In this document: positions 48,699-49,619 of the stretch, piece by piece
Position numbering within the stretch: the stretch's first letter is position 1
Layout of the letters: each line of letters opens with the position of its first letter
Source: Podarcis filfolensis
Taxonomy: Eukaryota
NCBI GenBank assembly: GCA_964270895.1
Contig: OZ185435.1
Length of the DNA: 64,000 nt
Strand: one strand, 5' to 3'
Notes under the pieces: generated by a model
Database searches by the model: none
Told to the model about the DNA's origin: nothing
The model's input: only the letters and a program-made list of their open reading frames with translations
Program-made: the position numbers and the translations under genes

Positions 48699-49619
48699 GA
48701 GGCAAACGGCAGAAGAAGGAGACAGGACCGGCGATCCTTGCTGTGCAGGGGGCGTCTTGGAGATGCAAGCAAAGCACCCCTGCTGGGGGGCGTGGGGGGG
48801 TCTTCGAGTCCAAAAGGCCCCGTCAAAGGGACATGGAGGGCCCAAGGGGGGTTCCTGTGGTCTCTCCGTGGTGGCAGCCCCCAGTTTACACAACTATATC
48901 CCGGCAAAGTGTGATCCCCTGAGAAAGATGGGGAGGAAGGAGGCAGGCAGGCAGGCAGGGAGGATCAGGAAGGAGAAAGAGGTGGGAGAAAAACAGAGAG
49001 TGCAAGGATGCAGGAATCAGAAGGGAAGAAGAAGAAGAGGGGGAAGAAGAGGATTAAGGCAGAGGATAGGGCAGTACACAATTGGGGAGGAAAAGAGGAA
49101 AGGGAGGACAGCGTATCCAGGCAGGGAGGGAAGAGAGAGAAGACTGTTTACACACATGTACCAACCGCCAAGGAGTATTTCTCCGGCACACTGAGCAGTC
49201 ATTAATGTATGCAGCAGTGTAACAGTTCCTGGTCTCCCTGCAGCTGGGTGTCCCAGCTCCCTCCCGCAGTCTGCTCGGCTTCCCCTCCCTCGCCTCCCAC
49301 ACAGAGCAGCCCCAGAGTTCATCAACACCCCGGGAAAGGCAGGGGAGCTTGACCCATCCGTCTCCTGCTTTCTCCCTCTCTCTTTCTCTTTCTTCTTCTT
49401 CTTCTTCTCCCCCCCAACCCCATTCCCCACTGTCTTCTGTTGATCCCTGCCAAAGTCCTTTGCGGTATTGTCTGACAACAACAACTCCTCTCTGTCATTC
49501 CCTCTCTCTTGCCCCTCCTCACTCACTCAACTCAGCATCAGCTTCCTAGACACTATCAATGAGGATGAGGATGGATTTTTTTAAAAAAAGAGAGAGAAAG
49601 ATTTCCAAAGAGAGGAGCC

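Follow-up and report, generated by a model that had tools for sequence, protein, structure and literature searches.

Comparative genomics has revealed conserved N-terminal extensions that begin at codons other than AUG (Ivanov et al. 2011, PMC3105428; Fedorova et al. 2022, PMC9789052), recognized by coding-type evolution ahead of the first AUG and by a conserved near-cognate codon, in good context, at the 5' edge of conservation. The closest described system is TRPV6, whose initiation at an ACG is experimentally established and reported to be exclusive (cited in PMC9789052 and PMC3105428). IFITM10, as analyzed here, resembles TRPV6 in being a membrane protein with a conserved, AUG-less, in-frame extension upstream of the annotated AUG, at the head of which an ACG would be decoded as methionine. 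It differs in that the ACG start is one that we infer from sequence and RNA contigs, and in that the 120-aa AUG-initiated form is probably made too. IFITM10 was not among the conserved non-AUG extensions of the first survey (PMC3105428), nor was it a candidate in the second, in whose supplements it occupies one row with the other entries zeros (PMC9789052). The pipeline of the latter excludes extensions that overlap annotated coding exons (PMC9789052), and an AUG-based long isoform of IFITM10 is annotated in mammals, for instance as a gibbon protein. Neither survey made use of what the lizard gene offers, a stop codon that serves as a natural test. Nothing tying IFITM10 to non-AUG initiation was found in the literature searched.

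Within the same family, IFITM3 and IFITM2 occur in forms that differ at the cytosolic N-terminus, which arise through AUG codons or alternative transcripts. The IFITM10 extension has no detectable similarity to these variants. IFITM10 has been called the most conserved IFITM, and its function is unknown (PMC3424830, PMC3499546). The length given in the literature is 120-130 aa, yet databases contain long forms with conflicting N-termini.

The window, a stretch of 64 kb from Podarcis filfolensis, carries IFITM10 on its minus strand as two coding exons, 48918-48486 and 24913-24767, which split the gene inside the CD225 domain (Pfam PF04505). The first of these (48486..48918), delimited by its acceptor, its donor and spliced RNA contigs, comprises the extension, the N-terminus of the short form and the first half of CD225. 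Its acceptor is strong (a long pyrimidine tract followed by cAG at 48920-48919), its donor at 48486 reads AAA/gtaagt, and the CD225 match within it scores 29.7 bits (cut-off 27.1) over residues 100-128. The last coding exon (24767..24913, minus strand; VRDKK...PLTNY), located by sequence search and Pfam, encodes the second half of CD225, which on its own scores 25.9 bits, slightly below the Pfam cut-off of 27.1. Nearly all named entries among 115 database matches were IFITM10, with 85-97% identity in sauropsids; the two exceptions were a Naja "hypothetical protein" and a gibbon entry labelled cathepsin D. The Ensembl Podarcis protein differs from that of the window at 1 of 185 residues, and the C-terminus ...PLTNY is the one found in lacertids, which marks the gene as that of a lacertid-type lizard. 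On the strength of these names and identities, we assign the gene to IFITM10 rather than to another IFITM. Cathepsin D exons lie upstream on the same (minus) strand, at 58222-64000 of the window, an arrangement also seen in mammals, and CTSD-IFITM10 synteny has been described previously (PMC10415907).

Two further features of the gene were observed. An internal donor, GAG/gtgaat, at 48575-48576 on the minus strand would yield the 90-aa isoforms (..PDTTEV/RDKK..) known in RefSeq for Podarcis, Lacerta, Zootoca and Pogona, which are without the first hydrophobic segment of CD225. The large intron contains a run of 159 N at 35580-35738, either an assembly gap or a masked stretch.

The first in-frame ATG of the gene (48696..48698, minus strand; ctcATGg) lies in a weak context and begins the 120-aa form. 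It is conserved across all aligned amniote sequences, and its equivalent is the start codon in frog. Upstream of it the IFITM10 frame stays open for 65 codons, none of them an ATG, until it is closed by a TAG (48894..48896, minus strand) whose last base is base 25 of the exon. Eight codons downstream of this stop stands an ACG (48867..48869, minus strand), the candidate near-cognate start, embedded in the Kozak-type context GCCACC-ACG-G (48866..48875, minus strand). Counted from the ACG, the first in-frame AUG is codon 58; 128 codons run to the end of the exon at 48486 and 49 more fill the last exon, for a total of 177 aa. The extension thus amounts to 57 residues, rich in proline and cysteine, that precede the classical 120-aa protein, the 56 codons after the ACG occupying 48699..48866 on the minus strand; Pfam assigned no family to it. 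The preliminary description of this DNA had reported the open frame, the weak ATG, the TAG 25 nt into the exon, the ACG with its context and the lengths of the two forms, and every one of these was borne out on the minus strand, the TAG also by RNA contigs. The resemblance of the encoded residues to mammalian IFITM10 is likewise real, as database proteins read ...STTDG(A/T)QEARVPLDGAFWIPRPP..KGCFACVSK. The 10-mer at the ACG, GCCACCACGG, occurs once in the 64-kb window, with 0 occurrences expected from 100 shuffles. Neither the TAG nor the ACG is an assembly error, because two RNA contigs (matching 48484-48917 and 48484-48901) agree with the genome letter for letter.

Other codons in this region bear on how ribosomes might use it. 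An in-frame CTG (48882..48884, minus strand; aaaCTGg), in good context, is a possible alternative near-cognate start in squamates, and the ORF map placed within the extension an out-of-frame ATG (48834..48836, minus strand) in weak context that opens an ORF of 3 codons. Separately, an 18-nt block, ATATAGTTGTGTAAACTG (48886-48903, minus strand), is near-identical in lizards and snakes yet under no coding constraint; it carries TAG and TAA in two frames, so that upstream ORFs of both end 17-24 nt before the ACG.

Comparison DNA was drawn from Logan and ENA contigs and comprised eleven further loci, with species assigned by protein similarity alone: lizard (L002/L003), snakes (L001 and L004), birds (L005-L010), frog (L014) and four mammals (L011/L012, which represent one species, L013, L015 and L016). 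Across lizards, snakes, birds and mammals, dN/dS of the extension was 0.07-0.26 when read in the IFITM10 frame, and it exceeded 1 in both alternative frames. Synonymous outnumbered nonsynonymous substitutions at every scale: 9:4 between the window and lizard L002, 16:4 between the window and each snake, 4:0 between the two snakes, 6:2 between birds and 12:3 between mammals L011 and L013. Identity in the extension was 85-97% among sauropsid IFITM10 proteins and 63-68% in mammals. The dN/dS values, together with the contrast between frames, therefore show that the extension evolves as a translated frame, also in those squamates that carry the upstream stop. The coding signature that had been proposed to span the interval from ACG to ATG is thus a clear one, and it sets in at about the ACG. 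Nothing comparable to the extension was present upstream of the start codon in the frog locus, which makes the extension an amniote feature; we take the comparison to indicate that it arose in amniotes and is maintained by purifying selection. A 108-codon ORF in the +1 frame, opened by the ATG at 50709, was considered as a conserved product and rejected, since its frame showed no coding constraint over the extension.

The same data bear on the reading that the extension is untranslated in this lizard, which would make the 120-aa AUG form only, the conservation reflecting either a recent loss or constraint at the level of nucleic acid. For lacertids and Pogona, every RefSeq form recovered begins MENK, and lizard, chicken and marsupial IFITM10 are given as 120-130 aa in the literature (PMC3424830), as this reading would have it. 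The TAG, however, is common to two lizards and a snake and hence old, and the squamate extension nonetheless retains substitution ratios of 9:4 and 16:4, with variable columns falling 5, 2 and 21 at the first, second and third codon positions. Such a third-position bias and synonymous excess are what a translated frame shows, and neither an RNA element nor decay would leave them; we regard the absence of translation as very improbable.

Where this constraint begins was determined from the distribution of variable columns over codon positions. In the four mammals, the 48 nt from the exon start to the ACC held 6 variable columns, 0 of them at third positions, so that the counts by position were 2, 4 and 0 upstream of ACC-ACG versus 4, 3 and 24 downstream (p = 7e-4); in the mammalian extension, 24 of 31 variable columns were third positions. 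Squamates gave 4, 1 and 3 upstream, in addition to a 2-nt deletion and the TAG/TAC difference, versus the 5, 2 and 21 downstream. Pooled, the share of third positions was 3/14 upstream versus 45/59 downstream (Fisher p = 2e-4). The upstream stretch also differs in other respects: mammal L013 has a 1-nt deletion upstream of ACC-ACG, mammal L016 is without the acceptor AG, the Otolemur model has unrelated residues there, and the Microcebus model is 6 residues shorter there than other mammals. In squamates, the TAG occurs in the window, in the second lizard (L002/L003) and in snake L004, while snake L001 has TAC; snake L004 additionally has the 2-nt deletion, located 9-15 nt ahead of the ACG. Of the 5 squamate substitutions in the interval from CTG to ACG, 4 alter the amino acid and 0 are synonymous. 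Lizard-bird similarity drops away directly upstream of GC(T/A)GCCACCACG. The coding pattern thus ends abruptly at about the ACC-ACG codons. The two snake contigs, which come from adjacent run accessions, were observed to differ in the upstream frame that runs into the extension.

The ACG itself, the A at -3 and the G at +4 were invariant in nine independent sequences from four amniote groups, the alignment set consisting of two lizards, two snakes, three bird sequences and four mammals. The preliminary description had named a lack of conservation of the ACG and its Kozak context as a refutation, and this was not found. From -6 to -1, lizards and birds read GCCACC, snakes GCCATC, and mammals AGCACC. 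Invariance of the third base of the ACG is by itself weak evidence, because the third base is likewise invariant in 3 of 10 comparable fourfold-degenerate codons. The CTG at 48884 is in frame in the window, in L002 and in L001 and out of frame in L004, owing to the 2-nt deletion; it is absent in birds and mammals, and outside squamates was seen only in one turtle model.

The structure of the mRNA was read from assembled RNA contigs. One contig of run X4 (record 9; 1204 nt, depth 25.6) lies on 48484-48917, continues without a gap on 50666-51112, and extends a further 323 nt beyond this stretch on the last-exon side. The join, from 50667 to 48918, is a canonical GT-AG intron once a one-base ambiguity is settled. 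It was read from the layout of the contig pieces, the row of the joint table having been dropped owing to nearby repeats, and it stems from a single fully spliced contig. Given the join at 48918, the TAG lies in the mature mRNA, and a contig of run X10 (48484-48901) also contains it. No junction at 48893 was present in the X4 or X10 contigs, these being the two informative runs; the raw-read runs X23 and X24 had almost zero coverage of IFITM10. The 5' noncoding exon thus joined to 48918 (50667..51112, minus strand) carries four upstream ATGs, which the upstream-ORF map (minus strand) places at 51014 (26 codons), 50874 (22 codons), 50848 (in the IFITM10 frame, 68 codons, stopping at the TAG) and 50709 (the +1-frame ORF of 108 codons, which extends beyond the ACG and the ATG alike). 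None of the four upstream AUGs on the X4 mRNA reaches the extension.

Beside these contigs, two observations concern the 5' end of the exon. The match of the X10 contig ends at 48901, with 24 unplaced letters 5' of that point; an allelic difference, a further junction or the start of a transcript could each account for the break. At 48901-48902, birds and lizard L002 have an acceptor, CCAG/G, where this genome reads CCGG. In the intron, a mini-exon-like block occurs at 49938-49997 on the minus strand (...cccacag/CCACCCC...GGGAAAACTGCTGACAG/gtgaaagg), whose donor-like end is conserved in two lizards, one snake and one bird and which sits inside a wider conserved block, 50006-49715. It contains no ATG and had zero RNA depth in four runs.

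A conventional long isoform could nevertheless be assembled if an AUG-bearing first exon, such as 50387-50244 (phase 0), were spliced to the weak acceptor at 48893, the AG of the TAG, and so removed the stop, as the RefSeq and Ensembl lizard models have it. The candidate exon (50244..50387, minus strand; ATG at 50387, donor CTT/gtgagt) is in frame with the extension only via 48893, and through that acceptor it would form an uninterrupted ORF, MPLDLF...ESLL/.... Some ten RNA-type runs contain 0.75-1.00 of the words sampled from it, its predicted product is partly like the bird first-exon peptide (LPSS.NSS, EPEAVLS), and the 48893 acceptor is used by seven lizard models. Against such an arrangement, the X4 and X10 contigs include the TAG as exon sequence and show no 48893 junction, and both runs have zero depth on 50141-50339. 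The acceptor at 48893 is preceded by purine-rich sequence without a pyrimidine tract and lies 25 nt behind a strong acceptor. The candidate exon is located within a CpG island and could be a divergent transcript of the other strand, its frame differs between bird and lizard, and when joined to 48918 it yields a mere upstream ORF that ends at a TAA (48886..48888, minus strand). The AUG exons of the lizard models are moreover unrelated to one another and to 50387-50244. The preliminary description had held that dominant splicing from an AUG-containing exon into the AG at 48895-48894 would account for the extension conventionally; the sole fully spliced contig uses 48918 and keeps the TAG. We consider the conventional isoform unlikely in this lizard, if distinctly less so than the absence of translation.

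The retained TAG invites a different account, in which translation starts at the AUG at 50848 and then either reads through the TAG or terminates and reinitiates just downstream. This AUG is in the IFITM10 frame, its 68-codon ORF stops exactly at the TAG, and the block ATATAGTTGTGTAAACTG, which bears stops in two frames, is near-identical in lizards and snakes. The frame across the stop nevertheless differs among squamates, through the 2-nt deletion in L004, the TAC in L001 and the TAG in lizards, and the residues upstream of the extension are under no coding constraint. The stop context, TAG-T, is not known to be one that promotes readthrough. Reinitiation 24 nt past an ORF of 68 codons is expected to be very inefficient. 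Readthrough or reinitiation accordingly ranks with the absence of translation as a most improbable source of the extension.

Near-cognate initiation, with the ACG as the best candidate codon, is the explanation of the long IFITM10 form that we favor, at somewhat better than even confidence, from the genomic comparison and the RNA contigs taken together. Scanning 43S complexes would bypass the upstream AUGs of the long leader, which are weak, and a fraction would then initiate with Met-tRNAi at the ACG in its optimal context, GCCACC-ACG-G, to give the protein of ~177 aa; in squamates the CTG five codons upstream of the ACG may serve too. The remaining complexes would continue scanning as far as the ATG at 48698, where the 120-aa form starts, so that a single mRNA could give rise to two forms differing in the cytosolic N-terminal domain. 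Initiation at the ACG, like the ratio of the two forms and the function of the extension, is something that we infer. The four upstream AUGs, including the overlapping 108-codon ORF, should render downstream initiation inefficient and count against the ACG model. It had further been suggested that the GC-rich sequence downstream of the ACG might fold and so aid initiation; this idea found no support, the region from +1 to +80 folding at -22.6 kcal/mol versus -23.1 +/- 2.9 for shuffles (z = 0.17). The earlier ACG-extension interpretation is consequently upheld as regards coding constraint, conservation of the ACG and presence of the TAG in the mRNA, and not as regards downstream structure; of the three outcomes that the preliminary description had listed as refuting it, none was encountered.

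The database models are of interest in this regard, as the annotated long IFITM10 proteins (RefSeq and Ensembl, about 190-230 aa) use the same exon and share the same block from TTER/TTDG onward, whereas their N-termini upstream of it derive from non-homologous AUG exons in almost every lineage, and none of these N-termini is allowed by the mRNA observed in this species. Bird models have AUG exons that are similar over several orders (MGAPPP..PSL/, MDGQTG../) and are spliced in frame to an acceptor, CCAG/G, homologous to 48902-48901; in some lineages, therefore, a conventional start can give rise to the extension. Bird contig L006, when searched, did not yield this first exon of birds. In turtle and emu models the reading continues from the homologue of the 48918 acceptor, and so it does in Crotalus models, yet the first exons of two congeneric species of the latter are unrelated. 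The seven lizard models enter at /LCKLG, that is, at the AG of the TAG, by way of mutually dissimilar AUG exons, and look forced. Mammalian models have mutually unrelated sequence upstream of the exon. A tblastn search with the annotated N-termini of other species did not detect any homologous coding exon in the window; its sole match was a weak one, of the 5' exon of a Gekko model to 51087-50998, in two different frames.

The Ensembl Podarcis model takes its N-terminus from a 5' exon peptide (49312-49268) that we rejected as an alignment artefact: its junction would require a donor without GT at 49268, a position that an RNA contig crosses unspliced. This contig belongs to a set of low-depth, unspliced RNA contigs (depth 3-5) covering 49207-49546, within the intron that immediately precedes the coding exon.

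Taken as a whole, the annotations show the pattern expected of pipelines forced to supply an AUG to a conserved block in which there is no such codon. The proposal that AUG-based long annotations mask an ACG start fits these data, in that N-termini upstream of TTE/TTD are unrelated between species. A more far-reaching form of the ACG model, which we advance only tentatively and hold to be less likely than not to be correct in full, is that throughout the amniotes, our own species among them, the long form has the ACG as its main start, an ancestral one of some 300 million years. The annotated AUG first exons would then be leader sequence with upstream ORFs, the mammalian and bird residues upstream of TTD/TTE would not be real protein, and both forms would be made from one mRNA by leaky scanning.

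Were near-cognate initiation to be confirmed, the real N-terminus of IFITM10 would be defined, and AUG-start constructs would prove to omit a conserved domain, with consequences for antibodies, expression constructs and knock-outs. Many vertebrate annotations would need correction. IFITM10 would join the conserved non-AUG N-terminal extensions as an added case, and a well-supported, evolutionarily deep one, in which the lizard stop and the snake frameshift act as natural experiments against AUG-based explanations. It would also illustrate how screens for non-AUG extensions miss genes that are already covered by a doubtful AUG model.

Two elements elsewhere in the window were recorded in passing. 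On the minus strand, a tRNA-like Rfam match at 42009-42066 (33.6 bits, model positions 8-63 of 71) probably represents a repeat derived from a tRNA and not a gene. A short element at 52130-52530 reached a word depth of 1e4-1e5 in RNA contigs and about 100-400x in raw RNA reads. Rfam returned nothing at gathering score for it; with numerous variant letters and with loose ends flanking it on either side, it looks like a highly expressed multicopy repeat, for example a SINE.
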